A DNA stretch of 64,000 nt from NCBI GenBank assembly GCA_050084985.1, contig JBITNC010000001.1, forward strand, positions 10,602,001 to 10,666,000, written 5' to 3'. The stretch is from Nageia nagi. Lineage: Eukaryota; Plantae; Pinophyta. A model generated the notes under the pieces. That model was not told where the DNA came from, did no database searches, and was given only the letters and a program-made list of their open reading frames with translations. Within the stretch, counting starts at the first letter, position 1, and the number at the start of each line of letters is the position of its first letter. Below, piece after piece: positions 2,586-43,900 of this stretch. The translations under genes were made by a program, and so were the position numbers.

Positions 2586-4011
2586 ATAATGCATTATACA
2601 TCCCAACACTTGAAAATGAAATTTCTGAAGCATCTGATGAAGACGTACGTGTGTATGGTTTGTTGGGGGATTTTTCTTTCCTACCTTGTTGATAGGCTAA
2701 TTAGCTTGCAAGGCTTATGAAGACACCAACACCTAAGTGATAGGGCGTGACCCCTATCCGCAATGAGGACTGGTTACCTCAAAGGTCTCGTGATTGGATA
2801 TGCAAGAGGTTACTCAGGAGATTGGTTGAGATGTTTAAATTTGTTTCCAACTCAAATAGAATTTGTTAATCAAGGACTCAAAGTGTCCCTATTTCTAGAA
2901 AATGGTTGTTTCTCAAAAGAAAAGTAAAATTGGGTAGTGAAAATCGCGGGAAAAAAAAGATGAAAAATAAAAGAAAAAGGTAGATTAGACTATGGTATAT
3001 GAGTTGAGCACAAGTGCATATGGTCTCATCGACTTGTGTAAGGAATGGAATCTACTTCTTTCAGGCTTGATGCAAGTTCCACGCACTCCTTATTTTTATC
3101 ACTATCCAACTATACGAATGGACAGTGCAAAGAGCATGAAGCTATAGGCGAGGATGGTTGTAAGGCAAATAGTGGGTGAATCATCAACGGTGGAGTGAAG
3201 TTCTTGCTCTAAGTGGCATAAAAGGAGTCATCCCAAACGACACAAGTCTTATATGCAAATCATAAACTATTGCACATCAAATCTCATGCAATGATTACTT
3301 CAAGTAGTCAACAAATTCTTTCATCCACCTCAACACAAGGTTTATGAAATGAACCAAGTAAGCTTGGGCAACACAAGATAGCAATACCATTCAATCAAGG
3401 ATTCAATAATGCATTCAAGACATGTTCATGATTCCATTAATGAGAACATTGACCATTCAATTGCTTGAGATAATACCACATTCACAAATGGAGCAACTTG
3501 TTTATTTGGAAGTAACAGTTAAGTCTTTCACAAGTGCAAAATGTCTAATCCCTTTCAAATGAGCCCAAGTGGGCTATAAATAGTTTTCTTGGCAACCCTA
3601 GATGTTGCCCTAACCCTAATTCCAAAATTTGAGAAAATACAAATGGTCCAATCAAGAAGTGCGACATGGCATTACAAGGTTTCTTCCAAACTTGTGGGAC
3701 CAATTCCTCATCCATTACAAGTTTGGGAATTAAATAACAAATATAATAAACTATGGAGAAAATGTGACTTCTAGATTGATAGGTGTTGACATCATTTGTC
3801 ATTAGCCTTGTCATTAAGTATTTCAACCTCCTTTTGTACCTTTTGGAAGCGAGTGGCTATTTAATGGATAACACCCAAGTAGAACCAGTAATCTTCACAA
3901 AACTTTACATCCTCAGGCCTCTGATCCTAAGTCATTTCAAATCTCAATATCATTGGTTTTCGGGATTCTAGAATATTTTGAGAAGGCTGACTTTTGCAAC
4001 CATAATATCTT

Positions 4012-6559
4012 TCAATTTTTGTTCTTCAAATGTGACCCTCTGCAATGCACAATGAACTGTTGCACCACTATCAAGACTTCGTCGATCACTCTGGTCAATC
4101 TCCTTTGAGTGGCTAACTCCTTGAGGCTCTTTATCTCTTCTTCTTTTAGCATCCCATCCTTGGCGATTGCCTCAGTGTTGGATATGATTGCATGTTTTCT
4201 ACCAACCACACCAATAGGACCTGTATTGATAATCTGGTTTATTTGCCTAAGGTCTCCAGGTCGTTGTGGGTTGTCCTTGTCAGCAATTATGGTCTTAATG
4301 TGAACTGCATTATTAGCCAAATGCACATAAGTTTGAATCTTACCCAGACAAGTGGAGCTTTCTCCAACTTGGTCGTTAACTTCTAACTCCAAACTCCTCC
4401 TCGACATCCATGTGCTCATCAGTGGGTGATGGCTAAAGGGTTTTAACAACTGTCTCCTGAGTATTGGTGACATTTCTCTTGGTTCTTTTCAAAGGTCTTT
4501 CTTCTTCTTCAATATGCTCTTCGGAGGCTTCTGATGATCGAGACTGGGAAGTTCTCTTCAATTGTGCTCTTTTTTGTACTAACTATGAAGCTGGACTTTT
4601 ACCCTTCCCCGTTGAAGGTTCCGAAGAAGTAGGCTTTTGAACTACCTTTAAAATCTCTAAAGATCTATCCTCTTGTTGGGTATTTGGAACATCGTTGCGT
4701 TGAGTTGTACTCACTTCCTGTTCATCTTCTGATTCACTTGCTTGTCCTTCCTCTTGAATTTCATCAGGTTCATACATGGGACCAGAGGATGAGGACCCAG
4801 ATGGCGGAACGACTAGTGATGGACATGCAGTTGATTCTCTAGGTGGTCTTTGCGGTTGGGATAGATCCTTCTCTCCGTTCCTGACACACCTCACCATTTT
4901 ATTAGTGGCCACACGTTCCAACTCTCTCATGTCATGCTCATCAATGGTGTTCCTAACTTGTACTATCTGCTCCACTGGATTCTTACCACGCATTAAGGTA
5001 TATTGGCCAACAGGTTCTTCAATTCTAGGGGGAAATTGGGTGACCTTGGAAGTGAACTCTTGTGGTCTTCTCCCTCTTGATTGTGACAACCTTTTGTCAG
5101 TAGTGGCCTCAATAGTTTGTTGTTGCTCCTGAGCATCCTTATGCATCTTGGCATGAATCCTCTTAATCTCCACCTCATTGGTTATATTTATGAAGGGCTC
5201 CTCTTTTGTGAGTGGCTTATGTTCATAAGATCTTTTCCTTTCCTTCATGTAGAGTTGGTGAATTCTGTGTTGTGGATCATAGTGACTTGTGGCAGGCATT
5301 TTCTTGAAGTTGTATCTCTCCAACTCCACTTTCATAATATCAACATCTGCCCATGTCCTGCATTGGTATTCTCCAACTATGATTGACAAGTTTGAGGTGG
5401 CCGATTTCTTTTGCCATGCCTGCTCATGCAAGTAGGTCAATTGCCTCATCATCTTCATTAGGAGCAATCTATTGCTCACATACCCTAGCAATTGATATGG
5501 CTTCATGACTAACCCATGAATTCGGTTGTAGGAATAGTGTTGCTGATGGATGAAGAAGTTCCCATGCTTCCTGAACGTGTCTTGGGCTGAATTTGAGATC
5601 CTAGCCATTGTGATTTCTCCCTTAAGCTCTTTGTAGATCTCATACTTCCATCCATCGTTCTTCATGATGAAACTATCCCATCTTCTCTCAAGCTTCCATT
5701 TGGGATAGCACTTCCAAATAGTATATGTTCCTTTTTCAATCCATGTTGCTTTCCCTTTGGCCGTGGACCTATACTTGCCATGAAGCAGCAAGTATACTAA
5801 GTAGGAGTTGAGATAAAATTTACGTATGGTACCCATAGATGACAATTGGTATGTAATAGTTTTGCCCAACACCTTGCTTCACTTGATCTTCTTCCCTTTG
5901 GCTATCTCCACGATGAAGCCAAAGAATTCCTTCTGAACTTGGTGCATCTTCTTTTCCAGGACTCTTTAACACCATAAAGATCATTAATTCCACAGAGGGG
6001 TGGAAGTTGGAGCGAGGGGTATTGATGAGAGCATTCCCCTTCATGCCATGATGCTTATCAAGAATCCAATTCCTTATAGCAATGGCAACCTTGTTAGTAT
6101 GCTGATAGCAAGTGAGTCTGCTTTGTTATATTCAAAATTTACTTATGAAGTCCATTGGAATGCCATTTTGATGGCGTCGGGACTGAAGTCCATGATGATG
6201 TTTCCCTTAATATCCTGGAGCACCGTCTCTCCCTTTTGCCAGTGGGGATTGATTTCCATGCATAATTCTGGAAAAAGGGCTGTAAATGGGACGAAGGTAC
6301 AATTGGAAAGCTTGGAGAAGAATACTATGTCTTGTTTGAGATCATTGGTTTGCATTCTACGTATCCTCTCTCTCATTTGCATGGGGTCTACGTTTTGAGA
6401 ATCTGTGTCTCCAATTGTAGCAAGTCCATTTTTGGAGAATATGGCTCCTTGAGGAAGAGGGTCTTGTCTCTCACAAATGGCGATGATGCAATCTAGCCTT
6501 ACTCGTTCGAGATCTCTTGCAAAATCCTTGGCTGAACTGCTTTTGGAAGTGGTCATGAT
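4012..6559 (-). pseudogene. ORF A: decayed protein (~850 codons) of the uncharacterised retroelement accessory family
   Basis: ORF pieces 6143-6622, 5820-6044, 4583-5872 and 4012-4473. Motifs IGDTDSQNVDP, PFTALFPELC, IIMDFSPDAIKMAFQW, KFYLNSYLVYLLLHGK, PYQLLGYVSNRLLLM and HYDP are shared with ORFs B and C. Confidence 0.8.
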
Positions 6560-6918
6560 GCTCAACTTTGTGACGGGATTCTTCAAGAGTGATGCGTGAG
6601 TCTTTGTCATGAGGCTACCCAACGTTGGGTATCTTGTCTCTCAACTCCTTGCGCAAGCCCTAAGATGCAATGGGATGGATTCCAAACTCAAAAAATGGCA
6701 TTTTTCTGCAATTTTGGCCCAAGGGTAGAAGAGTGAGCTTGTAGTTATAGCTGAAATTGGTCTGCAAGAAACCCTAGTCGGCTATGCATGAGGTAGGATT
6801 TATCCTGGCCGTCCAGATGGCCGACCTCAGGATGTGTGCATATTTGAAATCACATGTCGAGCCATGGGTAATCGGATGTGGGGGTTCTGGAGCACTTCTA
6901 GGCCTAGCGAATGCCCAT

Positions 6919-7430
6919 AAAAGACAAGATTTTGTCTTTCTGGAGCATGCGCCAACCCTGGGGATGCATGCTCTTTATTCATTGGTCTTTCTGGCTCCCG
7001 TGCTCGTTCGTCTTGACTTTGAAGCTCATCCTGAGACCTGAACTTGCCTGATTTTTGCTCTTTCTGGTGCCCAACCTTGTCAAATTTGATCATTATGCCC
7101 AACTTGGACACCCCCCAAGTCAAGTGCATGATTCAAAAAGACAAGATTTTGTCTTTTTGAAATGTGTGCCCCACTCTCCAACTCTCCCAGTTTAAGTGCA
7201 TGATCCAAAAAGACAAGATTTTGTCTCTTTGGGGCATGCGTTGGGTTGTAGACTCGATCTAGGTTGCTCCCTGACCTTAGCGCATGCTCCAGAAAGACAA
7301 GATTTTGTCTTTTGGAGGCATGTGTTGGGCCTCAAAGTAGCCCAGATTGCCTTTCTTTGACTTGATTCTGGATTGGATGACTCTTGGACATGAGCACATG
7401 TCCCAGCAAGACAAGATTTTGTCTTCTGGA
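6919..7430. repeat. Five copies of the palindromic motif AGACAA-GATT-TTGTCT upstream of ORF A
   Basis: Cores start at 6922, 7139, 7211, 7295 and 7409; most are flanked by GCATG-type arms. Confidence 0.9.
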
Positions 7431-7752
7431 GGCATGCGCTGGGCTTCAAAGTGGCCCAGTTTAACCCGACTTGGCTTACACTCGTCTTGGATTCTCCTAA
7501 CTTGTCTAAGGACAACTTTTAATTTTCCAGACTTAGCCAATTTTTGGAATTGGAATTTCAGCTTTGGTTCAACATGACTGAGACGGGGCAAATGATAAGA
7601 CTTAGGCTTAGGAGGACTTGACATAGTAACCAGGTCTTAGGAAACCTCTTGAGTTGCATGAGACAAGTACATGACACTACATGGACACAAGTTGTTGAAG
7701 GTCCCCAAAATTGCTGGATTTAGGGGCATTTTGTGTTAGTCACAACATGGTC

Positions 7753-9319
7753 TTGATATTGTCTTTCAAAGACTCCAAAATTATGTAATTGAGAATCTTG
7801 TACCCGACATTGATTACGATGGTGATTCTGAAGAAAATGATTACTTTGATAGCGCATCTATTCCAAGTGACACTGAGAATAAAGATTACAAACCAGAGGA
7901 GATTGAAGTAGACTCAGTTGAAGAATACATATTAGCACCAGTTGAACCTGAGCTGATTATCATCAACGATAGTGACGAGTATACTCCTGTAGTCGCATCG
8001 GTTGATCAAAGTTTTGACCTTGATCTTGAAGCATCCGAGTCAAATTCTAGTTTTCTGGTATCTCCACTAGCACCGGTTGAGCCATTTGTTACTGAGGTTC
8101 CAATTTTCAACAGTGATCAAAGCTACAGGTGTAACCATTGATATCGCTCTTGCAGCCTTAATCAAAGCCTATGTCCCACATACTCCACTTATCTTGAATC
8201 CTTGCAAGCAAGTGGACAGTTAGCCTCTCTCACCTTCGACACCTTTGCGGAGAAGATTTAAAGAGCGCGAAAAAGCTTTTGGAAAGAAGACAATTGAAAC
8301 TACCTCAGACACTTTCTACATTGCTCAATTAGAGAAGAATTGATCTCATGATTCTTCTTGTGCAGAAAGTAGCAGCAAAGGTCGTGGTTGGTGAAAATTC
8401 CGAGGCAAGGGGGTAGAAATCAAGTTGGTTGTGGCGATAAAAGTGAGCGGTCCCATCTTTATTGCACTAGATGTGGATGAAAGGGCCATGAAGTTGCTAC
8501 CTGTCATATACCATGAGAAAAATTCACATAATTCAAAGTAAAGAGCAACATGGTGATCAGAGTATGAATTTTGCATCTACTCATTTCGTTACAGCTGAAT
8601 ATAACGTTGGTCTTAGTGAACTATTGAATTTTTCATACGCATCATAGAAAGATGCATGGTTGCTTGATACAAGAGCAACATGTCAAATGACTTACATGAG
8701 GGATTTCTTTGAGAAATTAAATGAAGACATTGATGGTGCAATCTATTTTGTGGATAGATCCAAACTTAAGCCACCTAGAATTGGTTCTATCAGGCTCAAA
8801 TTACCAGGTTTTCCAGATTTTGTGCTTCAAAATGTTCTTTATCTTCCAAAATTGCGGAGAAATTTGCTTCCCTTGTTCTTGTTTGGCAACAAGGACATTC
8901 AATCCATATGTTTGACGACAAGGTGAAGATATGACGATCTTTTGACAACAATATCGTTATGCTTGGTTTGGAGGATGGAAAGCAATTGAAGCTCTCTGGC
9001 ACTTCTATTTGATCAAGGATTTTGCATTCCTTGCCTATCAAGAAAAAGGTACAATTCCCTCCAATCTTTTGTGGCATGCTCGATTTGGGCACCTTAATTT
9101 TGATGACCTTTGCCTATTAAAGAAACAAGGTCTTAATGGTTTGCCTACAATCCCTAGAAACATTGCACCTTGTGAAGCTTGTATCCTGGGAAAGCATCAC
9201 ACGCAACCGTTTTTAGATTCCCAATGGAGAATAAGTAGAATAATTGAACTAGTTTGCTCCGATTTGTGTGGTTCATTTTTTGTTACTTATGTAGTTGGCA
9301 ATAAATATCTTATGACTTT
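7753..9319 (+). pseudogene. Copia gag-pol fragment: CCHC, protease, GAG-pre-integrase, integrase N-part
   Basis: CTRCG*KGHEVATC (~8463-8504); WLLDTRATCQMT (~8657); LWHARFGHLNF...CEACILGKH; ELVCSDLCG...KYLMTFI. Contains stops and frameshifts. Confidence 0.9.
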
Positions 9320-10917
9320 CATTGTGTTGGGATGCTTTTCTTTCCCACAGAGACTCTCTAAAAATCACACGCGGAACTTAGGAGATCCCAAGCAACATAG
9401 TCGGGAATGCGTGACCAATTCCTCCATTTGAAAAGGAATTTATACCTCCAAGGCTTTTGTCGAAACACCCTACTCAACAACTCAATGTTATGACATTGTA
9501 GGTATGCTTGTCAAGCGTGTTTCTGGTATAGGGATAGATAAAAGAAAGTGTGGTATCCCTCTTTGGAATCAGCCTCAATGGAATGGAATGAGAGGTAGCA
9601 GTCTGTTAACCAATGTTGTTTTATTTGATGTATAGAGTTTATTTGTAACACTTTTGTGTGGATTTAAGTATTGTATTTGGGTATGAAAGCATAAAGGTAA
9701 TACAACAAAAGGTGAAGGACAACACCTTGGAGAAGGAACAGATACTTGGTCGGATATGAGTTTGAGGTTCATTGATGGGAAAGTGTCTAAGAGTTGATCT
9801 CTTTCGAGTTGGTTAAGGACCTTTCATCCAATTCATCCAACTTTGCAAGCAAACAACTTCAATGTTCGAATTGCTTCAAAGAGGAGCGGAGAGGAACACC
9901 AAATGTCGGTTCTCTATGAATAGGATCGATGCAATTGAATGGAAATGGAAGGTTTCAAAGTGAAAGGATCATGGTTTTGGATGAAGGACCTAACAAGATG
10001 TCATGAAAGTAGAAATTAACATAGAATACCCAATCAACTTGTATGTTAAGGACCGAGCAACAAGCATAGGTAAGCTTCAAGCACTTTTTAAAGTAGTTCA
10101 AAGATAACTTCTCTAAAGCTCGAAAGCTTTCAAATGAATAAAACGAAAGTGCACAAACCAACTATGAATGTCTTCAAGATTAAATCCATAACACCAATAT
10201 GAAAAATATCAAACTCAAGTCTTTGCATAACCATTTCGTATTGATTTGAAAAAGGAGGTGCAAAGATTTACAATATGCTCCCACTTCTCAAAAGTTCTCT
10301 CTTCAAGAATGAAGTGTTTGCTTCAGAATGAAGTCCTTCCAAAAATAAGACGCTTGGTCTCTGACTTACAGACTTTTGGAAACCCTAAAAGTAACTTTTG
10401 AAACCCTAAAAATGAGTTTCAAAACCCTATTCTCTAATTGCATCATTAACACCTATTTACAAGCTAATTGAAAATGCTAATTGAGATTACAATTGGACCT
10501 AGTGGAAATGCACTAAGTTAGCCAATATTTGACTTACATATCAAAATTTTGCCAAAATAGTCCCCTTTCTATACCGGCGATGGTGGGAAGATGGCTTGTA
10601 CATTTGTCGTGATTTTAGCTTCAAAATCATCTCCCATGAACGCTTCTACATTCCAGATGGCTTGGTGGATAGTCTAGAGGACTCCTTTGTTTGGTATCAG
10701 GTGCTACAGGATGGTCTTATTGGTTTTGACCATTTCCTTGCACCTTGTAGCAAAGTCTAATTCCTCCTTTCATTTGTTTCCCTGTTTTCAGGTTTTGTGG
10801 ATCATCGGGACATAGTTGCTTTGCAATAGTGGTGTGGATTGTTGTCATCAACGTCATATACTCTTTGATGCTGTCGTTTTCCTCAAACAAAGGTACTTGG
10901 AATTGGTATTCCTTTGC

Positions 10918-13824
10918 TTACTCACTGATAATGGCTTTGAGTTGAGCCTTGGTGTATATGAAGTTGGTGGATTTGACTTTTATGTAGAATAGATAATCAT
11001 ATAGTTGGAACTTGTCTATGCAAAAATCTAGCACGATCGGATGATGGGAAGCCCTTCTCCATAGATCAAACATTGTAGGGTATCCATTCTTCCATTTGAT
11101 GATCAATTGGTCTAATCTTTCCGTCTAAGAATGTGAATCCTCCTCCTCAATATAAAATTTTTTCATATTTGAGTGGAGTGCTTTGATAGCATCAATAAGA
11201 TCCTTGGTCCATTCTTGTTTCAAGGCGATGATTCCAGTATTTAACTCAACTTGCTTTTTGATATCTTCAATTGTCAAATTAGCAGCCTTGACTTCTTTGG
11301 CAATCATTTCTTGACTAGCCACCGTTTTCTTTATTTCTCGGATATCTAGCTTTAACAAGGTATCAGATTCTCTCAGTGCCCTTGCATTTGTGATGATGCT
11401 ATGCTCCATTCCCAATGGGCCAACAATCTCTGCAGGGGCTTCTTCTGTCTCGATTGTGAGAGCAAACTTCTCGGTACCAACCGTTTTCTTTTTGGAGTAG
11501 AGCTTGCCCTTGTAGGTGACTTTACCTATAGTGGTGGTGAGAGTATCAATTTGCTGAAGTTCCTCATTTTCATCTTCGGAATCTTCTCCTTCGCAGGGAT
11601 GATTAGAACTCAAGTTAGCCATCACTGTAACCATGTCGAAGCAATGTTCCATGGGTTGTTTTCTAAAAGGAACCATCTCTTTGTCTTCGATGATTTCAAT
11701 GTCATGCTCTACTAGTCTTCTTTTTCTTCTTTGGTCTTCATTTTCTCCTATGTCTTCCTGATTTCCATCATCTCCCCTTGAAGATGATGCCATTGTCTTG
11801 GGTCTTGATGTACCCTTCTATGTTGATGTCTTCGTAGCCCTCCGAGATGGTGGCATTTGTGACACCTGTTTCTAAGAAGCGGATTTTGGGCTAGCTGCTT
11901 CTGGTGCATGTTGTACAATCATATCAATAGGGTGATTGTCTTTATCAAGGATCTCTACTGAGTGATCAGTGTCGACCCTATCAAAGGTAATATCTCGGTT
12001 TACTTCCATGTCGATGTCGATGATTGCACTAAGATCCATCTCTTCATTGATCTCTGATGAGCTACTCGGTCCATACTTGTTGGAACTGGATGATGGTGTA
12101 CTGGGGTTCGGATTTAGGCGCATGCCACTTCGATTCAACCTTGCGGGATATCTATCTTCTTTTGCAAGTGTTTGAATGGTTGAGAGATCAAGCTTGCTCT
12201 TTTGAGGTCCATGATTCCATTCTTCGTACCTGTGATAATTATTTCGATGGTTTGTCCGAGGGTGCTATTGGTAGCATATTGCCCGTTCTATCCTTGAGCC
12301 AAGGTTAGTAAAGGTGATATTATGGGGATAATATACCCATGGCTCGTGGGTATTGTGACCTGTGCCTTGGCTTTCAACCTGGCAGCTTCTTCGGCTTCTT
12401 GTTTTTTTGCTCTTTTTTAGCTCTTTGTGAATCCGTTGAACCTGTAAGGTGTCCTGAATGCTTCTGTACCTCTCAATATAACCAAGGGATTGGTGTGGAT
12501 ATGATGAGCTCCATGTTCTTTGAAAAAATGCATCAATCACTCCATCAAGATCATAATGATCCGCAGCTACCTCAATTGGGAATTCATACAATGCCATCTC
12601 TTGTTTGATCATATCAATCTGACTCTAGGTACTCATAATTCCTAATGATGACAGGTAATTGGTAGGTGGTTGCAACCTTCTTTACCCATACCTTATCATG
12701 CATGTTAAGCAAGTGTTTGGAAAATTCCATGAGGATGAGACGATTGCTTGCATAACGGGGTAGCTTGTAAGGGGCTTCTTTGGAGCCATAGACTCTGAGG
12801 TATGTGAACTCTATGTCCTCTGCAAAGAAGTCCGCATGTCCCTTGATAGTGGCAACAACTTCATTAGATATTTTGAGCATGTTACTTTTGCCCATGATCT
12901 CTTCATAGATATTGCCTTCGAAACCGGCAGTCATCATCATCTAGTTGTCGTCGTTCCATTTATTGTGAGCATGAACTATGGGTAATTTTCCCACATTGGG
13001 TGTGTGGGGTCATACAAATATTTGGTATTGGCAATAGAGGTTACCTTCTCCCTACAGTGAAGGAGTAGGTAAACCAGGTAGGAGTTCATGTAGAATTTCT
13101 TGCTTCTCTGAATGTTTTTTAGTTATTGAGCCAAGGAATCACTAATCACTCTGCTCCACCTTATGCCTTTACTGCCACCGATCAAATCTATAAACCCAGT
13201 GAATTCTGGCTAGAATTTGGTGTCATCATTCTGTTCGGTCACTCTGGAAAGCATTGATATAAGTCTGGAGACTACTGGATAGAATTCTCCTCTGTTAGGC
13301 AATGCTAAGGCTTTCCCTATGAGATGCTTGTAGTCATCGGCCAACCAATCTTTGATCAAATCAGATGGAGGTTTCAGACTTTTGTAGAACCTTAGAGAGT
13401 CTTGCACGCTATATGATATGCCTTTGCTTTTCCAAGCAAATGCCTTTTCTATTCCTTTCTCAAAGAAGACCATGATTACTTCGTTGTTTCTGTGAAGGAG
13501 TCTCCGCCTTTGGGTGTCACAATGCTTTCCTAGCTTGTAGCACAGCTCAGGGAAGGGGGTGGCAAATGGCACCGTAGACGCTGCTAATAGCAAGGAAATT
13601 TTTAGTGGGTCCTTTACTAGTGTAGCTGGATCCATCGTTTGTATTTTCATCAAAGTTTTGATGGGGTCCAAGGAGTTACAGTCTGTGTCCCCAATTTCAC
13701 TCAATTGATCAATGATCCTTGTAGCAAGCATCACAGGCTCTGTTGTATGTTCAAGTGTGATGGGGCTATCCATTGCGAGCCTTCTCTGCTTCCTGTCCTT
13801 GATATTCTGAGCGACTAATGCCAT
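10918..13824 (-). pseudogene. ORF B: decayed protein (~950 codons) homologous to ORF A and C, with acidic and coiled-coil-like C-terminus
   Basis: ORF pieces 13210-13824, 12614-12940, 12265-12612, 11872-12138, 11125-11793 and 10918-11106. Motifs IGDTDCNSLDP, PFATPFPELC, KFYMNSYLVYLLLH, RVYGSKEAPYKLPRYASNRLILMEF, HYDLDGVI. Confidence 0.8.
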
Positions 13825-14280
13825 CCCATCCTTGTCTTAGAGAATAACACAGAGTTAGAAGAGTCCTAAGAAGCTTGTGGCACTTTCTGGGCAAGCAAAA
13901 AGAGGTTTTGAAAAATTTGGATTTTTGGGTTTTTACTCTAAGTGTACACCATCGAAAATGCCAAAATTTGCAAGGTTCAAGGCTTTTGGGTGAGTTTGGG
14001 ATAACACAAAGGTAACTAGTTCAAGGGAAAATGCCTTGGGAAAAACTTGGGACTTTTGAAGAATTTTCAAATTTTGGCTCAAAAAGTTGACTTTTCCAAC
14101 AGGAAAAAAGGGTGAAATTTGGCAAACTTGCCAAATGGTGTCGGAATGAGTGGGGAAGGTGTTTTAAACTTTGAAACAGCCAAAACGGACTTGAAAAACA
14201 CTTTTTGGAGTTTTTGAAAAATTTTCTAGATTTTTTTGAAATTTTTTGAAGAAATGAGGATTTTGGCACTTAGATCTTGG

Positions 14281-14283
<3 letters not shown>

Positions 14284-14337
<54 letters not shown>
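14284..14337. repeat. (AT)n microsatellite, ~27 units
   Basis: Read directly from the sequence. Confidence 0.95.
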
Positions 14338-14341
<4 letters not shown>

Positions 14342-14690
14342 TTTTTTACTGAAAATAAAAGTTGATCACAAGAATAAAGGGTATCCAAAAAAGTGATCAA
14401 ACTTGAAATCTGGAAAAATAGTTTTTCAAGTGTTTGAGAGTTTGGAAAATGGGGTTTTGGTATGAAAATCCTTAAAAAACTTAAAAAATAGAGTTCATGT
14501 GGGATGGAGGATGTTTGGATCTTGAATTTCAATGGAGTTTGGATGAATGGTAAAGATGCTAAGTGTTCAAATTATGCTCCAAGGGTGAAAATGGGCTTTC
14601 TTCCTCACTTCAACTCTCCAATTCTCAAAATTTTTGGCAGCATAAGGGTGCAAAATGGGAGTATTGAGTGAAATGGAGGGGGTATGGGTG

Positions 14691-14698
14691 TATTTATA
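14691..14698 (-). promoter_or_regulatory. Candidate TATA box for ORF B
   Basis: TATAAATA on the minus strand, preceded by GACATGTGGCAC, ~870 bp upstream of the ATG at 13824. Confidence 0.45.
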
Positions 14699-15039
14699 GA
14701 CTTAGAGGGTCAAAAGGTGCCACATGTCAACACCATATCAACCCTAAGTGCAAATTTTGCATTTTGGACTCTTCCTCCTCATGCCCAACGTTGGAAAAGT
14801 GGAGTAAAATGGGGCAATAAGGCAAAACTTGTGCCTAAATTTGGAAGGAGCAAGTTTGGTCCAATGTGGGGGCTCTTGGAAGCAAAGATGATGGGTCTAG
14901 GGTGCTCTCCAACCTCCACACTTCAGATTTGGATTTCAAATTTTGAGAATTTTTGAGAAAATATCCAATTTTTTTGAGTTTTTGAGCCCTTGAATCCTTC
15001 TTGAAGGCAAAAAGGTGGTTTTTGGGAGTTTTTATGGAC

Positions 15040-18480: not shown

Positions 18481-18622
18481 TCCCATGTTGGAGAGCCTTC
18501 AAGTGGAACTTTACAAAGAAAAGGATCTTAATATTGTCCAGCTTATCACAAATTTCCCAAATTTACTCAAAAACTACTAAAATACCCCTAAATAGCTAAA
18601 TGAGCACAATGAGGGTGAACTT

Positions 18623-19847: not shown

Positions 19848-19946
19848 TTTGAAGATATTGGACCACACGGCACCAAGATTATTGTTTATAACTTATGGCT
19901 TAATGATGATGGTCAAATGGAGCTTGATTTCGATACAGACAAAAAG
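19848..19946 (+). CDS. MORC6: MORC exon: FEDIGPHGTKIIVYNLWLNDDGQMELDFDTDKK
   Basis: ttgacag|...|gtaaac, 99 nt; MORC HGTKxIxYNLW motif. Confidence 0.95.
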
Positions 19947-31900: not shown

Positions 31901-34900
31901 CAATTTGGTACCCCTTTTGATGATGCTTGCGTGCTAGAGAGTACAAGAGCTCAAGGCAGGTGAAGGACTCATAGGGCACATAATATGCCAAGCCCTAATC
32001 AATCATAACATCCCTTCTTGAATGAGCAAGCGATTTTCCTTTTCCGCTCACCTTAGGTGTCTTAAGCTTCAAAAGAACATGACTACAGTCAGCTTTCCAT
32101 GTATCCATATAATTGATTATTTCCATCTCTGTCTAGTTCACTCCTGGTGCATTCTCGAGATATTCTTCTTGTAAAAAGAGTAGGTCAGTGTCAAGTTGTT
32201 CCACTTCAGCTGCAGAGGATGATTGAGAGATCGCCATAATACTAACACTTTTTCTTGAACCTCTAGTTGTTATTAAAAACAACATTCTAAGCGATGTGAG
32301 GTCCTACAACCTTTTACTTTCTCAAGACAACTCGGCTTTGAAAACTCTAAGCTTTGAATGCTCTGGAAACTTGAGTGCTCAAAATTAGGTAAGTGTCGAA
32401 CTATAGAGTATGGGAGGAATTTTAGTTGTCCTAGGTTGGTAAGATTTCTATTAATGACAATTACTTCTTTAGGATTTTGAGACTTGCGCATTGTACGGAT
32501 TGAGCTAGCATAGACTGGATTAGTAAATTCAAAGCACATCAGACCTAATTGTTGTACTTGTACGATGGTTCATGAAATTCGAGGAAAACTTTCCTTAAAT
32601 GTTGTTTAATTCAGTGACAGCTGAGCAACATGCCAGCATTAACTCTCAACTAAGATGAATTAAAGTTGATAGCTAAGCAGTACGCTAACATTAACTCTTA
32701 ATAATACTGAATTAAATTTGATCATTGAAGACTTTTTTTGAGTTACAAAAGCTTGACAGATTGCCTCCAGTAAATGCTCGACCATTGTTTGATACCATAG
32801 TCTGTGGGATTCCCAAGCAGGTGATTATCCTTTTAATCATTTCTATCACCGTTTTTGATCTACATTTTTGCATGGCATTGCCTCTAACCATCTAGTGAAG
32901 TAATCTGTTGCAGTCAAAATAAACTTGTGGCCTGCTAAGGAATTTGGTTTATGACACCAATAAAGTCCATACCCTACTGTTGAAAAGGCTCTTTGACTAC
33001 CACAGGTTTGAGAGGCATGGTAGCTTGTCTTATCTTTCCCACAAATCTGTTGCACTTATCACATTCCCTTGCAATCTTGAATGAATCCTAAAATATAGTG
33101 GGCCAATAATATCTAGCTTATAATACCTTTCTTGCTGTAGTTGGTCCACTGTAATGCCACCAGAGAATCGTAATGAAATTCGTGCAATATTCTACGGGAT
33201 TTCTTGAGTCACACATCTAAGAAGGGTTTGATCAAAATTCTTTCTATACAAGCAATCATCTATTATGATAAATTTAAAGGCATGCAACTTGAATCTCCTT
33301 TTTTGGAATCTATCAAGAGCTTCAAGGCACTTACCTATTTGAAAATAAGCCATAATTTACTTAATCCAATCACCTTCCTAATTAAGTTGCTGCACATCCT
33401 CCATAAGAGCAATCATATGTGAAGCTTTAGCCATACTTTTACAGAGATCCCTACCTCTAATCAGCTTGGTTAGCTTGATCTCTATATCATATTCTATTAT
33501 TTTAGTTATCCAACCAACTTTTTCTTCACCTAAATCTCTTTGTATAATATGATTTCTTACATCTGGATGAATAGAATATACAAGGATTCTATTGTGGGAT
33601 ACATAATGCTTGAACTTTTTAAGTCCTTTCATAATGGAAAACACTTTCTTTTCAATAAATGAGTATCTTTGCTGATATTGATGCAGCGTCTGACTATGAA
33701 AAGCAATCGGGTGTTCTTCGTTATTGTCATCCTTCTGTGTAAGAATTGCAAGCAATGCTCTTGTCTGCTTCGTGTGCATACATGATGAAATCTTTTGACA
33801 TATCAGGGGTTTTAAGCACATGAGCTTTTGTTATAGCTTTTTTTATCTCTTTGAAGGCTATTTTTGCTTCACAAGATCAGGAAAATACATCTTTCTTTAG
33901 CATTGAAGTAATTGGAGATACAATTTTTGAAAAATTATTAATAAATTTCCTAACAAAATTGATCTGACTAAAGAATGATTGTAAGGCCTTCTTGTTAGAG
34001 GGAAGTGGCAATGCTTCTATAGCTTTTACTCTGTCTAGATCAATTGCTAACCCTTCTTTTGAAACAATGTGGCCAAGTAACTTTCCTTGGTTGACCATAA
34101 AAATTGACTTTTTTGAGTTGATTGAAATGCCGAATTTCATGCATTTTTCAAAGATTAATCTTAATGTTCCAGTTGATCACTTCTACTTCTAGAGAAGACA
34201 GTGATATCATCTAGATAGATCAATATAATTTTATTTATTAGCTTGCCAAATATATGATCCATGGCTCTTTGAAAAGTAGCTCCTGCATTAGAAAGACCAA
34301 ATGGCATCATTTGAAAAGCAAATGTCCTCCATTTGGTTGTAAATGTGTTTTGAACTGATCTTCATCCTTCACCCAAATCTGGTTAAATCTTGAGTAACCA
34401 TCTATCATTGAAAAATAGCAAGCTCCGGCTACTGTATGCAGGATTTGCTCCATAGGAGGGAGAGGATAATTATCTTTCAGGGACATTTTGTTCAAATTTC
34501 TGAAATCAACACAAAGCCTGATTTCTCCACTTTTCTTTCTCACAGGAACTAGATTTGCAACCCAAGAAGAATGTTTGATGGGATAAATAATTTTTGAATC
34601 AAGGAGCTTGATTAACTCCTGTTTCATAGCTTCTTCTATTTTTGGATTTACGGGTCTTTGTTTTTGCTTGTATGGTTTAGCTTCTGGTTCAAGCTCAACC
34701 GTGTGTTGGATGACGTCTTTGTCATATGTCTTAAGATCATCATAAGTCCAAGCAATCACTAGAAAAACTCATGATAAATCTAAGACATAGCAGTCTTTTT
34801 TTAAGCCGAACACTTTGAACCAATTTTTATGTGCTTATCGGGCTCTACCTCCAACTCAACATAATTCTCCTTCAAGATGACTGAAGACTCGTCCTTTAGG

Positions 34901-37900
34901 ACATCCTCTGAATCAAACAATCTTTCAAAGAGAGTAGTTCTTTTGGTATTACATTGTTTTTAAGTTGAATGACATCTGATTCTTGGAAACAATTAGGCAT
35001 TTCTTGAGTACCAAAAGTGTGAGCCACTGCTTCATCTACAAGGAAGTTGACAATATGTTCATCGGAGTCAAATACCTACCAGAAGTTTGCAACATCGGGT
35101 ATTGAAGGCTCTTGAACTTGACTTCAAGAGCTTCTTTATGATGGCGGGTTATAACGTGCTCCTCTTCCAACAAGTGCATCAGCTATTTGGTTGTGCCTTC
35201 TAGGAACAGATACAAAATTGATAGCAAAAAATGACTTCAATAAATCCCACACTGTTCCTATAGTTCTTCAGATAATGGTGCTTTGCATTGATTTGATTTT
35301 TCACTTGCTTGATGACCAATTCTTAATCACCATGGACAATCAGGCATCTAATACTTATATTGATTGCTTTAAATAACCCTAAACAAAGGGTTTCATACTC
35401 AGTAGCATTGTTTGTACAGGTCCATGTGAATCGGAAGGAGAATCTTTGGTAGTCCCCTTGGGAGATTTGAAGACCACTCCAGCTCTACATCCATGGTCTA
35501 CATCGGGAACTATCAAAATACATCGTCCATACCTCATGTTCTTTATCAGCAGTAATTGAAACCGAATAAACTTTCTCATATAAACAATAATTGCTTATGT
35601 TGGCATCTGTGACCTGATAATTTAGATCATTAGCTGATAGAACTTCGGTTGTCAGTAGTGATTCCTTAGTGTGTCACTTTCAAATATCTCCACTGGTTGT
35701 GGATCATTTATATAATTTACTTTATTGATTCTTTTGAGATGAACAGTTTTAGTGCCTTCATTCAGAATCTTCACCTGTTTGTTTTGGAAAGGAAGTAAAA
35801 GATGACTATAGTTAAGGTTAGGTACCCTCCCAATTTAGATAAATTCTCTAGAAAGACAAATTTCGAATAGAGGTAGAAGATCAACTACAATAATGTCTTG
35901 GACAACAGAATATCAGGGAAGGCATTCAAGGTTATTTGAACATCTTTAACATTACCAACATGATCTACCGAGGAAGAATCTAACTGTATTACACCCAATG
36001 CATCTTGTAATGTACAATTTCATTTCGTCTACAACAGCTTTAAGGATAACAGTTATGGCAGTTCCAGTATCAATCATACAATTGTTTACTACCTAGCCTT
36101 TTAATCTCAGGGATAAATAGAAAGGTGGGGGTCTTGTTACACCTATTAGAGCTGAAGGGACTACTTGAGACACAACATAGACAAGATTTTCTTCATTTGT
36201 CTTCTTTTTACTGTTTCTTAATTTTAAAGTTTCTTGCAGAAGATCTAATTGACCTGGTATATTTAATGAATCAAACATTGTCATCTTAGGAGTTTTCTTC
36301 AATTTTTTCACAATATTATACGGAGCATATGAGATGGACTTACTTGGTTCTGTTTGCTGATGTGTTCTGAAATGTTGAGTGGCATTTTCTTTATGATAAT
36401 TAGTGATGAAAGGATATTTCAACGTATCGGGTCTTTCTTTCTCCGGGACTCTTTTCTTGTTACAGTGGGGTTTGTTTCACTCGGGGCACTAGTACCTGGG
36501 TTTGACGGAACAGTACCCGGACTTGATGGAATAGTACTCGGGTTAAATGGGACTTGATGACGGTTCTGAGGTTGAGCTAAGGGATTCTTAGCTTTCTTAG
36601 GTTTAGGTTGGGCTTGAGTGGGAGATCGATACTGCTAAGTGCTTGAGGTTGCTATGGGGCTGCTGAAGAAGTTGCTTTGGTTTGGACACAATTTGCTTGT
36701 TCTCCAGCATATCTCGGAACCCAAAAGTTAACCATTGTGAGGTCAGCAGCAGGATCTGAAGCAGGTTCTACCATCTGGTTCAGAATGTAACCCCAAATAC
36801 TGATGTTGATATACCGTGCATGAATATGGAAAATGAGAAGCTGAACATGGTGGACACCATTCCTCAATACCCGAAGCAACACTATGTGTAGAACTGGTCA
36901 TAACAACAATCTCAATTGTTTTAGGAGGATTAGATTGTTCTGGTTGATTGACCTTGGGTTGGAATCTTGGTTGATACTGATTATCGTATCTTCTGTAATT
37001 AAAACCATGATTCTGCCTTTCTTGCAGAGTGAGTTTGTTGGTTAGATTTCTGATAGTTATCTTCAATTGCCTTATTCTCTCCTCTTCTTGAGATTTAGGT
37101 TCAGTACCAACGCTTGTGGATGCAAGAGCAGGTAATGTTGGTAGCTGATTTTGAACAGTAGGTTTGGGAGGAGGTGGTAAGGCCAGAACTGCAGGGTGAC
37201 CTATTTGTGGAGCCTACTTGGGAGGTAAACTTGGAAATACAGGCATGATTGTTTTGGGCTGCATTTTACCAGAGGATACCAAGGTATGTTCTGCTGTCTT
37301 TGCTGTTTGGTAAAAATCTGGGAATGTATCTCCTGACATAACAATAAGCATATTGAGGTTAGAAAGAAAAGCTTTTCGGTAATATATCAGAGCTTGAGCA
37401 TTTGTCGGTTTAATCTTTGTTGGTATGGATTTCAATTTTCTCTCAAATCTGATATTAAAATCATCAATACATTCATGCGGATGTCTTTTGATTCATGCAG
37501 AACGTGCTATCATCGCCATCTGCAGAAAATCTTTTAATCAGGGCCTAACAAAACTCTCCACATGAATTTATAAATTGGGGGGTGAGAGTTCTGAACCATT
37601 TAGCTGCTTTGCCTTCAAAAGAATGTGACAATAACCTTGTCATCACAGTTTCATCAGTAATGTTGAAGCTTGAAGCTAAAATGATACATCTTGACAGTGC
37701 TCATATGGCGTCTTTTCGGAGCCATCATACTTAGGCAAAACGTTAAAAGCTGCTTGAGGTATAGGCGGTGAATTAGCAGCTACAATCAAAGGATGACTAT
37801 TATTCCCAGGCAAGAAAATCCACTGGTTGAGCCATACTTGGAGAATGTACAGGAGGCAAAGGATTTTCTGAGAATGAGTCAAATACAATTGACAAAGGGG

Positions 37901-40900
37901 TAGCCCTTAAAGGGATCAAAGGAGACACAACCCGAGATATCTTTCGTCTAGTCCTCTTGTAAGGAAGTGACATCTCTTGAAATCTAGGCTGTCTAAGGGA
38001 ATTTCTGGCACTACTTCTAGTTAGTTTATGTTTTGAAGGTGCCAAGGTTCAAAAAACATTTGATTGGTTAACAGAAGAGTCGCCAATGAGGTTACAAAAA
38101 CCTTATAATCTTGAAGGATCAATTTGATAACCTACCAGACGAGGCTATCAGGCCTAACAATGCCTACTAAATATGATATTTAGCTCGTGTCCCATCGGGC
38201 GTGCCAAAAATGGAACTTTTTACTGTTGATCGGTATAGCGTAACCTCAAGGGTTTGGTCTGGTTGTGTTCTTCACTTCCCGCAATGCTAGGTTCCTTGAA
38301 AGAGCTGAAGGTGGTGGGGATGTGCCCGTGTTGGTTTTCTGCTCAATCTTTGGTTTATAGGTTGGTTCCTATCTATATTTAAGGTCAAAAGTAACAGGAA
38401 AGGAATAAGGAGATGAAGAGTTATAGGAAATTATGGTTGATAGACATTATGTTCGCTTGGATCGAGAAGAATTGCCACTGTTATGTGGAAATGAGTTGTT
38501 GTCGACACATTAACAAGGCCCCAGGGGTCAAACACTTAAGATGAAGTGGACCTGGGTGTTCTTTCTCATGCACTACTTTTTCACTTGCTTGGTGGGCTCT
38601 ATGTTCTTCTTCTGGGCTCTATTGATGATTTGGTTCTTCCGAGACTTGTTTATTTTCATCAAAAACTATGACGTGATCCTTCAAAATCCCCGGGCTCTGT
38701 TGATATTTTGATTTCGTTGGGACCCGCTGATTTTAGCCGAAAATCATGATATCATCTCTCAGGATCGACGGGCTCTATTGAAATTCTAATTTCTTCAGGA
38801 CCCGTTGATTTTCACAAAAAAGTGTGACATCACCTTTTGAAATCGTTGAGTTCTGTTGATGTTTTTCAAAAGTTTGCACCCACCATTGCTTGTTTCGGGA
38901 CCCGTTGATTTTTACCAAAATTTGTGACATCATCCTTCAAAATCGCCGGGCACTATTGATGTTCTTCAAAAGTGGAACTCTGAATGTGTACAAGTTTTGG
39001 ACATTTGTGCTAACAACTCCTAGAGACTCTAAGGCAACAAATATGATTTCAAGAATTTTTACATACATGACTTCTTGAGTATACTGGAGAAGATGACATG
39101 ATTCTTGGGCATTTTCAACTCCCGGTCACTAAAGAAAAGAATATAAAATTGACACAAGTCTTATGACATAACTCTCGGGTAACTTTATTTACATAATCCC
39201 GGGTACTACTAAAAAATGACAAAACTTCGGGGTAACTTTATTTACATAATCCCAGGATACTAAAAAAATGACTTCCGACACCCTAAGGAAAAGAAATGAG
39301 AAAGGGGCGAATTTATAATGAAAGAATACAAAATTTTATAACTCATGAGACTCTAAAAGAATAATTTCCCCCCTGGGTACTCTTATATATACAACTCCTG
39401 GGTAGTAAAGAATAAAATAATGAAGAATGAAAAATAATAGAATTACCCAAATTTTTGAGTGTTATTCTGGAGGAATACACTAAGGAGCAAAGAAGAAGAG
39501 GAAGCAGGTTGAGCACCAAGGTAAGGAGGTTGCCTTTATTCAAGCCACTCCAACGAAGGAAGTCAAGAAGATAAGCAAAGGCAAAGTGCTGGTGCAGAGA
39601 CTCCCTCCCAAGCCAACAATTGAATATCCAAATCTTGACTTGGGTGCCTGTCTAAGAGCTTTGAGCATGAGCACAACTCATGATGAAGAGATTGATCAGG
39701 ACCTAAAGTTTGAGGACAAGGAAGAGGATCTCTCCGATGGTGAAAAAGTTAGAAGAGTAGATACTTTTGGTTCTACTTCAAGAAAAGAGATCTCCATCAA
39801 CCATTGTTACTCCAAGGAGAAATGTACAAAAGGACTTAAGAACTATATGATTGAGACATATAAGATGCTTGTGAAATTAGGTTTGATAGCTAGGAAGCAT
39901 ATTGTCACTCAAAATGCTGCTATCATGGAACAAGAAGGCTATGAAGCCAAGAAGGAGGTGAGAAGATTGAAGAAGGAACTCACAACTAGCAGGAAGATCA
40001 TAAAAGAGTTCCAGACCATAAGTACCACCCTTGTAGAATTGAATAAACAAGCCTCGTTCCATCTAGGATGGAATTTGATGAAGAACTTTTGAAGAAATAG
40101 ATGATGGCGACCATTGAGAAGTTATCGTCTCAAATCTACATCCTCCTAGAGGAAGCTGTTGAAATCAGGGAGTTGAAATTGCAAATAACAATCCTTGTCG
40201 AAAAGCTTAACACCCATCTTCCCATTGTCACCCATTTGTAGCAAATGTTTGCTGACAGACATGAGAAATTGGTCTACTACGATGAGTTCATGTACCAACA
40301 TGATTGGCTAAAGCATTGACTAGACAAATGCCATGCAGTTTTGAAGATTAGAATCTCTTTGAGAAAAGAAGTGGAAGAGCAGATGAGCCAGCATGTATGT
40401 CAACTGAAGTTCCAAGGGGAAGATAACAACGTGCGGAGGAAGGAAGCAGTCTTGGCAGAGGCACAAAATTTAATCCAGGAGCATTTTGAGGTCGAGGATC
40501 TCAATTTACTAAAGGCAGGCCAACCCATTCATCATGAGAGGCAGATGGTCATCTGGAGATTTCAGATGCAGCCTACATCCACGTAGATTGGAGACTACTT
40601 CAGATAGAATGGCAGCATCATGGGTATGATTTCCATGGGATACGGAAGACCATAGCATTCTTGGAGGAGACCATAGAATTGTATGGTCTCACCAACAAAG
40701 AATGGAACTCCGTCGATGCTGGATCAGATCTGGCCTAGATTTGATCCACTCGCAGATTCTGTCTGTGATTATCTTTTTCATGTTAAATGCATATTATTGA
40801 TGGTTGTTGTGTTCAGACTTTTATTTACTTGATTTGACTGGTGCAGGGATGAGGTTTTGCTTCTGCCAGATCAAATATGTCAAACTCATTTTCTCCTGCC

Positions 40901-43900
40901 AGTTTAGATGTCAGACAATTATAGCATATCTGATTTTATTTTGCATAGATTAGACATTTTGCGGCTGTGACATTTATATTTTGTCAGTTTTTAAATGCCA
41001 CTTGCATAGTTATTTGTAAGCAATGAAATTTTGCATTGGTATGTGTGTTGCATGTAAGCACACCACATCAGATTTGATGCCTATAAGGCAACACTTCTAG
41101 TGGCCTATTTATACACCACTTGGGCCATTTAGAAGGGATTTTTGCATAATATTGATTGCATAAGAGGATTATTGCATACTTATGGTTGCATATTGTTACA
41201 TCTTTGGTTCATTTTGAAATATCATATTGAGAGTTTTGCAATCAAGAAAGGAATGCGTCTGTTCATGTTATTGATTATCATTGTGAGTTGATTTCTTTCT
41301 AGAATGGTTATGTAAAGTTAATGCTGTGAAGATTGTCATTCGTGGGATTATGCATATGATCTTGTAAGATTTTCTTGTTGGGTTGAATAGTTTTCACTGC
41401 TTAAGTGCATTCTCTTTGAAAACTACGAGTTTAAAGGGAAGATAGTTGAATATTTTTTGAAGTGGTTTCAATTGTTCATTGCATGATTTGCACATAAGTG
41501 GATGTATTCTATGGCTTATAGCTTATCTCTATGTCATTTAGTTAGAATTTATGTATTCACATGTTGGTCATTCCCTTCATCCATCTTCAATTGAATCTCC
41601 CACCATAGACCCTACAACATCTTGATTTCGTCTGGTAGTAATTTGAGCTTTTGCTATTTGCTGCTTGGCTTGATAAGTGATTACATTTTCTTAAAGAACC
41701 GGGAGATGACCGGCCGAGACATTGCATCATTGGTGACACCTTTATAAGCTTATTATTTATATTCCTATGCATTTATCCCAGCATTTATGATCTTTCTTTG
41801 CTTTCATTCACATTTGCAGTTTTTCCTATTTGTGAAAAAGAATTTTGATAGTAAATTTCCCTTGTATACGGTTAACAACATGCATCTCTATCCATGTGCC
41901 TTGGTCCATATTCCATGTGAGTGCTTGGGGTAACCACTCCTTTCAGGCAGAAACAAGTAATGCTGTTTCCTCTAAGTCTTGTGCATGTTTTGGATGAGGA
42001 AAGAAGAACATACCAATAGATTACTCAAGATTCAATCTGTAATTGAGGATGAGTGATGCTAATGTATAATAGTCTTGCAAGGTTCCCATCTTAGATGAAT
42101 TGTAGTTTAAGTGGATTAATAATATGACCTCCAATTTCATCCCCAAAGCTAGAATAAAAATTACATTATGAACCTGGCAAATTTGTCTGGTTGCTGTTTT
42201 ATATATGGCTATGGTTTTAATTTCACTACTTTGTTTTCCTGCATGTATTTTCTTGTTTAATATGTGTGTTCTGAATTGTCAATCTTTGATTGTCCTCCCA
42301 TATGGCCAGTATATTGGGGTGCTTGTCAGCCATTGTGCAACCCAGACATAAATAAACAATGGACTGCCAATGCTCTGTAAAATTCAATGAAAGGCTAATG
42401 TTGAGCACTTATGTCTCTCAAGGCCAATGGAAATAAGCAAACAAGGTTGAAAACGAAAGAAAATCACAAACCCCTGATTTATTTAATATCTGCAAAGAAA
42501 ATTTAATAAATGTTTGCAGAAATTGCAAAGAGAATATAGTAGGATGATTCTGAGGCTGCACACTAGTTCCTCTGAATGTCAGTATGTACAACTATAATGC
42601 AGGTAGCCTATCAACAGGAACTGCTCAAGTTGCCTAAAATGCCGGCCAATATAGGATAAGCCTCAACATGTATAAGAATCCACATGCCACCAAGAGTTGC
42701 AAAATATTACCGAACAAAATACACCTCCAAATTTAAGGTTTGTTTGCTATGTTGTATGAGTTCTTGATGCATTCGGATGTTCATTACTCATGATATTTTT
42801 TGTTTTGTTTAGAGTTGGCATGATAGGTGACATCTACCTGATTTCAGTTTTATATTTTTCCTTTTTATCCATCAATATGTTTTTGTTCTTGATGCTTGTA
42901 AGTTTTATATTTTTGCTTTTTATCCACGAATAACTCTTTGTTCTTGATGCTTGTAATATTGTTCTATGCAGCCATTTTGGAGAGTATTTCATGAGAATAG
43001 CAGCAGAGGAAGAGGTGTTGTAGGTAAGGAAATTTCTTTGCGCTGTACAAAAACCTACAGAATAAATTTTTGCAAATAGGGAATCAATGCATTTATTTCT
43101 TAGGTAAGAGTGATGCTTCTCTCGTGACATAAATATATGTATTGTTTATATTCTAGTTTATTACTGTCACAGTGATTTAAGTACAATTTGCACAATCATG
43201 AATCTATTCATCTTTTTTTATTCAGGTGTTCTTGAAGCCAATTTTATTGAACCTGCACATGACAAGCAAGATTTTGAAAGAACTGCTGTGTTGCTCAGGC
43301 TTGAAACTCGCTTGAAACTGATGACAATAGAATATTGGTGTGTATTACATCATGATACAACCCTGGATTTTGTTTGCTTATGCTTAGCGCATGTCTCAAC
43401 ACTAAAAAAGTGAGATCTTTTTTTTTTGATTTGATTAAATCGAGTAAATTTGATATTTAATAAAAAAAGCCAGAGTTTTGAAAGGACTTTTGGGAACCTT
43501 GTACATCTGTGGAGTCATAATAGGCTAGCTCATAACTCCTGAAGAAAAAACAACGAAGCATTATATATATTGATAAAACGTAGCAGATCATATGATAACT
43601 GATAAGTAACATTACAAAGTAAAAAACATAGCACATTATAAATGATAAGAATCATAGTAAAAACAAAGCATTCTAAAATGCTTCGTTTTTCATTATAGTG
43701 TCTTAGTATGACCGTTTAATAAATCATTTCACTGCAGATCCAAAAACGTTGAAGAGGTGCTCTGTTTAAGCCCGACAACCCCGTGTTCTCCAGCACCTCG
43801 TACTGTTTGAAAGATGAGACTCTTCCTCGTACCAGATTTGAGCTTTATGATTCATCTTACTTATGCTACGGTCTTCTATCCCAACAAAATTACAAATCAC

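Follow-up and report, generated by a model that had tools for sequence, protein, structure and literature searches.

How does a mobile element with the ends of a long terminal repeat (LTR) retrotransposon, and no detectable gag or pol, come to hold a long gene of its own? The question arises from a 64,000-nucleotide stretch of the conifer Nageia nagi (GenBank assembly GCA_050084985.1, contig JBITNC010000001.1, positions 10,602,001 to 10,666,000 of the forward strand; hereafter the window), in which three units, A, B and C (Table 1), each carry remnants of the same kind of open reading frame (ORF). An earlier description made from the letters alone, here called the sequence-only reading, took the units for solo LTRs of a retrotransposon lineage whose LTR carries a full transcription unit. 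The analysis described here shows that the ends of the units are of the integrase type and points to a gene under strong purifying selection; the units themselves are moderately likely to be solo LTRs of three old, related Tat-like (OTA) Ty3/gypsy families in which an extra ORF now lies inside U3.

Ends and boundaries of the units

Read in the orientation of the gene, A, B and C start with TGTTGT, and their 3' end is CAACA in A and B and CAATA in C; the units range from 5 to 8 kb. The 5-bp duplications that flank them are perfect in B and C and agree at four of five bases in A, so that the ends and target-site duplications of the sequence-only reading are confirmed with this one imperfection. 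Together with a copy from outside the window, described below, TG..CA ends, a 5-nt inverted repeat and a 5-bp duplication are combined in four units, and three of the four duplications are perfect. These ends and duplications are of the integrase type.

Restored host frames had been cited in support of the boundaries of A and B, and this support holds. Joining the flanks of A gives a single open host frame that spans the insertion site, and joining those of B restores a copia integrase motif (..NKYLMTFIDDYSRMSW..), with the left flank of B matching the gag_pre-integrs domain. Unit C extends over 22237-42018 minus a nested retrotransposon, D (26446-39479). A C-like copy in two metagenome contigs (L002 and L005) is contiguous across the insertion point of D, which validates the reconstruction of C.

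Thousands of short contigs from related genomes, at 85-95% identity, cover all of A, and the A family is therefore highly repeated in these genomes. Contig depth, summed over contigs from low-share skims of relatives (four runs) and unable to rank the parts of a unit, drops to ~0 to the right of 7767, leaving a sharp boundary at the end of A (7747). The two flanks of A would be expected to come from one host sequence, yet this depth is ~20,000-40,000 over 2461-2643 and ~0 over 7768-7947. A segment of ~70 nt in the left flank (2509-2581) varies among the related-genome contigs. In the copia element that hosts B, a 40-nt tandem repeat is present three times at 17517-17646.

The absence of terminal direct repeats, also claimed by the sequence-only reading, is borne out: when the first 1.5 kb of A, B, C or the L005 copy is compared with the last 1.5 kb, no direct repeat exceeds 12 nt. 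Pfam, family hidden Markov model (HMM) and similarity searches found no gag, pol or transposase inside the units. The earlier statement that the units have no primer binding site (PBS), polypurine tract (PPT) or gag-pol therefore stands for gag-pol and needs qualifying for the PPT, since every 3' end has a GGAAAGAAAAA-like purine run at a distance of 6-10 nt from the terminus.

Independent copies

Five metagenome contigs were fetched (L001-L005), of which L005 represents the same region as L002 and L003. A 7.3-kb A-like unit in L005 shares the termini of the window units, is flanked by a perfect CTGAC duplication and lies 33 bp beyond a C-like unit; a further A-like unit is present in L001. 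Copies outside the window thus share the termini, and one of them the perfect target-site duplication, as the solo-LTR proposal had required of further copies. A third A-like sequence, L005:12019-14601, is a 2.6-kb derivative without the ORF, nested in a reversed C-like unit. Its 5' terminus is retained, along with a portion of the upstream sequence and of the tail, the latter including the promoter-like block P2 described below; its 3' end is damaged, with CAACA absent and no recognisable duplication.

A selected gene in three old families

In blastn comparisons A, B and C are alignable only at their termini and, for A and C, over one promoter block, and they are therefore three old families and not three copies of one. 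At the protein level, tblastx and the family HMM detect homology between the three ORFs over ~430 aa at 35-48% identity. Of the long ORF of ~900 codons that each unit had been said to carry, the homology is upheld and the intactness is not: several frameshifts and stops interrupt the frame in every unit, open stretches reach no more than 431 aa in A, 230 aa in B and 202 aa in C, and the long ORF is a reconstruction.

A word-based protein search returned unnamed pieces only, namely P0003 (320 aa, N-terminal), P0001 and P0004 (496 and 544 aa, C-terminal) and P0002, which in combination imply a protein of ~900-930 aa for the A family. HMMER, run over 1.84 billion representatives, gave 78 matches, nearly all of them short unnamed fragments. 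They include P0038, an open homologue of 488 aa that covers both conserved domains, and P0079 (XP_057824563.1), a RefSeq mannosyltransferase isoform of Cryptomeria japonica whose first 83 residues match the family at 40% identity. A transposon fragment that was exonised or mis-annotated probably accounts for the N-terminus of this isoform, and with the isoform among the matches the family can be placed in conifers.

Comparison of the window copies with the contig copies gives a ratio of nonsynonymous to synonymous substitution (dN/dS) of 0.13-0.18 in the N-domain and the coiled-coil part, with an excess of third-position changes. A non-coding control chosen in the same manner gives 0.42-0.59 and flat codon positions; as the high-scoring segments were chosen by tblastx, both sets of figures are biased downward and it is the contrast between them that counts. 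This check for neutral evolution of the ORF, proposed with the sequence-only reading, thus points to purifying selection, and judged by these substitution patterns the gene is real and under strong purifying selection in active lineages.

Palindromes and promoter-like blocks

The double-hairpin layout of the A 5' terminus occupies the first ~50 nt and is also present in B (17213-17259), in C (22237-22287) and in three independent copies (L001/L005). The shared motifs at the 5' and 3' ends are accordingly real and recur outside the window.

Upstream of the ORF, each unit contains an array of palindromes, and the core of the array is different in A, B and C. The core of A matches five times, against 0.15 expected, and nowhere else in the window; it is repeated in the A-like copies of L001 and L005. 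C has five copies of ~45 nt at 22437-23364 with the core ACATGC-TTTT-GCATGT.

Two promoter-like blocks frame the A ORF. P1, ahead of it, is conserved in the alignment of A with L001 and L005, in both of which it reads GCTATAAATA, and is seen for the A family only. The layout proposed earlier, with a repetitive upstream region and a TATA-like box in all units, is therefore retained for the upstream palindromes of A, B and C and restricted to the A family for the TATA ahead of the ORF. P2 is the sole tail segment that A and C have alignable, lying ~910 nt from the 3' end and facing outward in both. Nucleotide conservation is highest in the tail of the units, and P2, their best-conserved non-coding segment, is kept in the ORF-less derivative. 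The content of the tail block differs between families: telo-box and TATA in A, TATA in C, and telo-box repeats only in B.

Solo LTRs or single-unit elements

The outward-facing TATA block ~910 nt from the 3' end of A and C resembles a U3/R boundary, which would place the ORF in U3; both the U3/R/U5 assignment and the existence of paired parents are inferred. An LTR of this kind would begin with an att end bearing the double hairpin, followed by a family-specific palindrome array and, in the A family only, P1. The ORF of ~900-1000 codons (helical N-domain, acidic linker, coiled coil) would come next, and then the core promoter P2 (telo-box and TATA), ~0.9 kb of R-U5 and the second att end. Transcription of the genomic RNA of a full element would begin at P2 of its 5' LTR, and this RNA would contain a single ORF, that of the 3' U3. 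Single units with intact duplications would arise by unequal recombination between two LTRs of this length.

The extra ORF of the Tat-like lineage normally lies between pol and the 3' LTR, and the nested element D appears to show this arrangement. D is a Ty3/gypsy element whose LTRs (26446-28411 and 38224-39479) are 93% identical and whose reverse transcriptase (RT) and RNase H matches are on the minus strand. Its extra ORF is a probable distant homologue of the A/B/C protein, as judged from profile and pairwise alignments: the 3.3-kb ORF region aligns with the family in hhalign at E 0.001 over 175 collinear columns, the preceding piece at E 0.023, and the extra ORF matches P0038 in BLASTP at E 3e-4. 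The family HMM does not detect it. The ORF-in-U3 state could have originated when the plus-strand priming site moved upstream of a D-like extra ORF, a route that the position of this ORF between pol and the 3' LTR supports.

Three further observations concern D itself. One of its LTRs contains a 710-bp insert at 26652-27361 that the other does not have, and its integrase is apparently cut short after the N-terminal part, near 32740. Directly after the 5' LTR (38190-38223, minus strand), AAAAAG-TTCC-ATTTTTGG is followed by CACGCCCGATGGG, an arrangement that resembles the second terminal hairpin of A, B and C.

Extra ORFs and LTRs of up to ~5 kb are familiar features of OTA elements, and a standard survey of plant LTRs limited their length to 6 kb (PMC6317226), a limit that could explain why the present elements are undescribed. 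Recombination is readier for longer LTRs (PMC7251063), which would favour solo forms.

Several points weigh against solo LTRs. Of the ~9 units seen, namely A, B and C, four in L002/L003/L005 and one each in L001 and L004, not one belongs to a pair or lies next to a PBS, a PPT or gag-pol. Upstream of the L001 unit, 8.4 kb of sequence gave no gag-pol similarity or Pfam match, and no TGG is present in the 5 nt that follow a C-like 3' end in L005. The homology of the D ORF to the A/B/C protein is weak, and a relationship of the D LTR to the tails of A, B or C was considered and rejected, as the two have no similarity. Solo LTRs are also reported to be rare in Pinaceae, and a sample made up of them entirely would be odd. 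The proposal of the sequence-only reading thus gains from the integrase-type ends, the selected gene, the full module in each unit and the probable homologue in D, and finds no paired copy among the ~9 units; on this balance we give solo LTRs only moderate confidence.

Rather unlikely, but in keeping with the fact that every unit seen is single, is that A, B and C each constitute a complete mobile element of one unit, lacking an LTR pair, whose TG..CA ends are the substrate of a gypsy or copia integrase that inserts it in trans. The ORF and palindromes would then be the element's own regulator module and the ORF-less derivatives would be non-autonomous; an internally deleted derivative with a 5' terminus is the pattern typical of autonomous/non-autonomous pairs. 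The 5' end also resembles the LTR end plus PBS-region hairpin found beside the D 5' LTR, and the purine run at the 3' end is PPT-like. Contig depth from related genomes is higher over the termini, P2 and the palindromes than over the ORF, although such depth cannot rank parts. However, no known mechanism yields integration-ready DNA without repeated R regions, a stand-alone element would have no evident use for a conserved outward promoter placed 0.9 kb before its 3' end, and the sample is small and non-independent. Taken further, the same account would define a self-contained element class, consisting of a partnerless LTR-like unit with a borrowed integrase, a gene for a sequence-specific regulator or anti-silencing factor, a palindromic target array and two promoters, with ORF-less deletion forms riding on the protein in trans; we regard such a class as unlikely.

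Solo LTRs whose ORF is a neutral passenger, captured or decaying and without function for the element, would account for the broken state of all three window copies and of the contig copies, and for the lack of a Pfam family that matches the ORF. The selection test disfavours this explanation, given that the low dN/dS of the N-domain and coiled coil was obtained from copies of different genomes. Moreover, the domain order is kept over three families at 35-48% identity, and open pieces of 320-544 aa exist elsewhere, which makes a passenger very improbable. Cut-and-paste DNA transposons with TG..CA ends and 4-5-bp duplications, either Ginger-like or non-autonomous relatives, are less probable still: the TGT..ACA-type ends, the 5-bp duplication, the single ORF and the deletion derivatives would suit them, but the terminal inverted repeat is just 5 nt, compared with tens of bp in Ginger, the two ends of a unit are strongly asymmetric, and the protein, which models as a helical domain, has no integrase or DDE match. 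This possibility was rejected on the short inverted repeat and the absence of a transposase. Non-autonomous elements of the large retrotransposon derivative or terminal-repeat-in-miniature type (LARD/TRIM) with short, overlooked LTRs are compatible with the size of the units and the absence of gag-pol, but are barely conceivable and were rejected because no direct repeat above 12 nt joins head and tail. A last arrangement would make LTRs of the first 20 nt and the final 10 nt, flanking PBS-like and PPT-like motifs; it was set aside because these ends are not mutual repeats.

The protein and its possible role

Pfam gives no match at E values up to 10 for P0001-P0004, eight ORF pieces of A and B from the window and ten homologues; the plant mobile domain (PMD, PF10536), DUF1985, DUF287 and rve/DDE families are among those that no family member matches. 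The ESM Atlas returns nothing for the 431-aa piece of A and, for P0003, weak leads only (0.80-0.83) to Transposase_32 and ATHILA ORF-1. The AlphaFold model of P0003 has a mean local confidence (pLDDT) of 69 overall and ~85-97 over residues 120-270. Compared with 48,161 chains, its best match is VANC21 bound to DNA (9LNK), with Z 6.3 and a root-mean-square deviation of 5.1 over 229 residues, which is middling for a helical model; the next-best match has Z 3.0. Foldseek against the PDB gives no match, also on re-inspection of its hits, and VANC21 is absent from them; a sequence-profile search of the PDB finds no VANC and nothing relevant. Likewise, a second model, of a 208-aa piece of B in which the domain is cut short (pLDDT 74, predicted template modelling score 0.39), does not recover VANC21 and has a best Z of 3.0.

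VANC proteins are anti-silencing factors encoded by the VANDAL (Mutator-like) DNA transposons (PMC5735166; PMC10398659; 9LNK), and their motifs build up as repeats in the non-coding DNA of the element, co-evolving with the protein (PMC5735166). VANC, which has been described as specific to dicots, self-associates via a coiled coil and is structurally related to MAIN, a plant-mobile-domain protein (PMC13547354). The present units resemble this system in that a transposon encodes an accessory protein with a coiled-coil part, in the repetition of short family-specific motifs in non-coding DNA, and in the rapid divergence of protein and motifs between related families. By contrast, the A/B/C protein has no sequence or profile similarity to VANC and its fold match is middling and not reproduced; the host element is a retrotransposon LTR of a gymnosperm, and the motifs are 45-nt palindromes as opposed to the 9-mers of VANC. 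The analogy makes it possible, though still doubtful, that the protein binds the palindromes of its own family as a regulator or anti-silencing factor, as VANC does.

In the extra ORFs of Ogre elements, PMD occurs more often than any other domain (57%; PMC6317226). Like the relation of VANC to MAIN, this invites a comparison of the A/B/C protein with the PMD proteins of Ogre, MAIN and MAIL1, from which it differs in that the Pfam PMD matches no family member. The protein family could be a far relative of the PMD/MAIN fold.

A separate ORF fragment at 58341-58694 (plus strand) carries a plant-mobile-domain motif (..AWGPALLAYTYGEL..); its match to the Pfam PMD, with E 5e-4, falls below the cut-off. 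The fragment sits in a G+C-rich stretch at 58-60 kb (46% versus ~36% elsewhere).

Comparison with known elements and significance

A gene that is wholly inside the U3 of a retroviral LTR, and so present in both LTRs, is known from the sag gene of mouse mammary tumour virus (MMTV). Both sag and, in the proposed layout, the present ORF are protein genes upstream of the start site of the LTR itself. The ORF described here is ~3 times longer, encodes an unrelated protein, belongs to a plant retrotransposon and is accompanied by a palindrome array that resembles a set of binding sites, and its U3 position is deduced from the TATA block. The solo LTRs of OTA (Tat/Ogre) elements (PMC6317226) share with the units TG..CA ends, a 5-bp duplication and great length, and the elements have tandem or palindromic repeats in their non-coding parts and a lineage-typical extra ORF, which D appears to show in its usual position downstream of pol. 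The extra ORF of those elements is internal, whereas in A, B and C the complete ORF, accompanied in the A family by a promoter, is enclosed between TG and CA; the units, at 5-8 kb, are at or above the 6-kb limit of that survey. A literature search for an ORF inside a plant LTR found no description, nor was one found of the variant suggested here, a selected gene with a cis-array in the U3 of a plant LTR.

If paired copies are confirmed, a lineage of plant retrotransposons keeps a selected gene of ~1000 codons within its LTR, and every full element would hold two copies of it. Solo-LTR formation, the usual route of removal, would then leave behind a promoter-equipped gene with its putative binding sites, and thousands of such units in a conifer genome could represent a large dispersed source of a trans-acting factor. 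The lineage would be a retrotransposon counterpart to the VANC anti-silencing system of dicot DNA transposons. For annotation, LTR finders limited to ~6 kb would miss or mis-split elements of this type, and gene predictors will call their ORFs host genes; the Cryptomeria japonica RefSeq isoform already includes residues that match the family.

Features of the window

Table 1. Positions of the units, their parts and the nested element D in the window (duplications on the plus strand).
Feature	Position	Strand	Description
Unit A	2661-7747	-	5087 bp; ends TGTTG..CAACA; flanks TGGTT/TGGTC; gene on minus strand
A 5' terminus	7690-7747	-	double hairpin: TGTTGTG-N-CACAACA, then CCCCAAAAT-N-ATTTTGGGGACC
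A palindrome array	6920-7426	.	five nested copies of ~45 nt, core AAAGACAA-N4-TTGTCTTT
P1, promoter-like block upstream of A ORF	6737-6779	-	telo-box CTAGGGTTT and TATA, mutated in A
A ORF remnants	4015-6640	-	pieces 6640-6146, 6125-5823, 5878-4586 and 4488-4015; 61-78% identical to P0003, P0002 and P0001
P2, promoter-like block in A tail	3571-3619	-	telo-box TTAGGGTTAGGG and TATA CTATTTATAGCCC; ~910 nt from 3' end, pointing outward
A 3' terminus	2661-2685	-	purine run GGTAGGAAAGAAAAA, 5 nt, CAACA; design in every copy
Unit B	9325-17259	-	7935 bp; in copia integrase gene; perfect duplication CATTG/CATTG
B palindromes	16710-16867	.	two copies, core CAAAAATGYRCATTTTTG
B ORF remnants	11128-13836	-	piece 13836-13213 scores 1e-57 with family HMM
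B tail telo-box-like repeats	10372-10429	-	TTTAGGGTTT, three copies; ~1.05 kb from B 3' end
Unit C, left part	22237-26445	+	5' terminus, palindromes 22437-23364, ORF remnants from ~24369
Unit C, right part	39485-42018	+	coiled-coil end of ORF (to 40089), TATA CTATTTATACACC at 41105-41117, 3' terminus; perfect duplication GATTA/GATTA
D, nested Ty3/gypsy LTR retrotransposon	26446-39479	-	LTR pair of 93% identity; CTAAG duplication; RT and RNase H matches
D extra ORF, probable distant homologue	28655-31994	-	between pol and 3' LTR; N-domain, acidic linker, coiled coil

To the right of unit C, two adjacent open pieces of 200 and 100 aa (47865-48753, plus strand) are serine-rich and have no Pfam match; they may represent a host exon or the ORF of another transposon.

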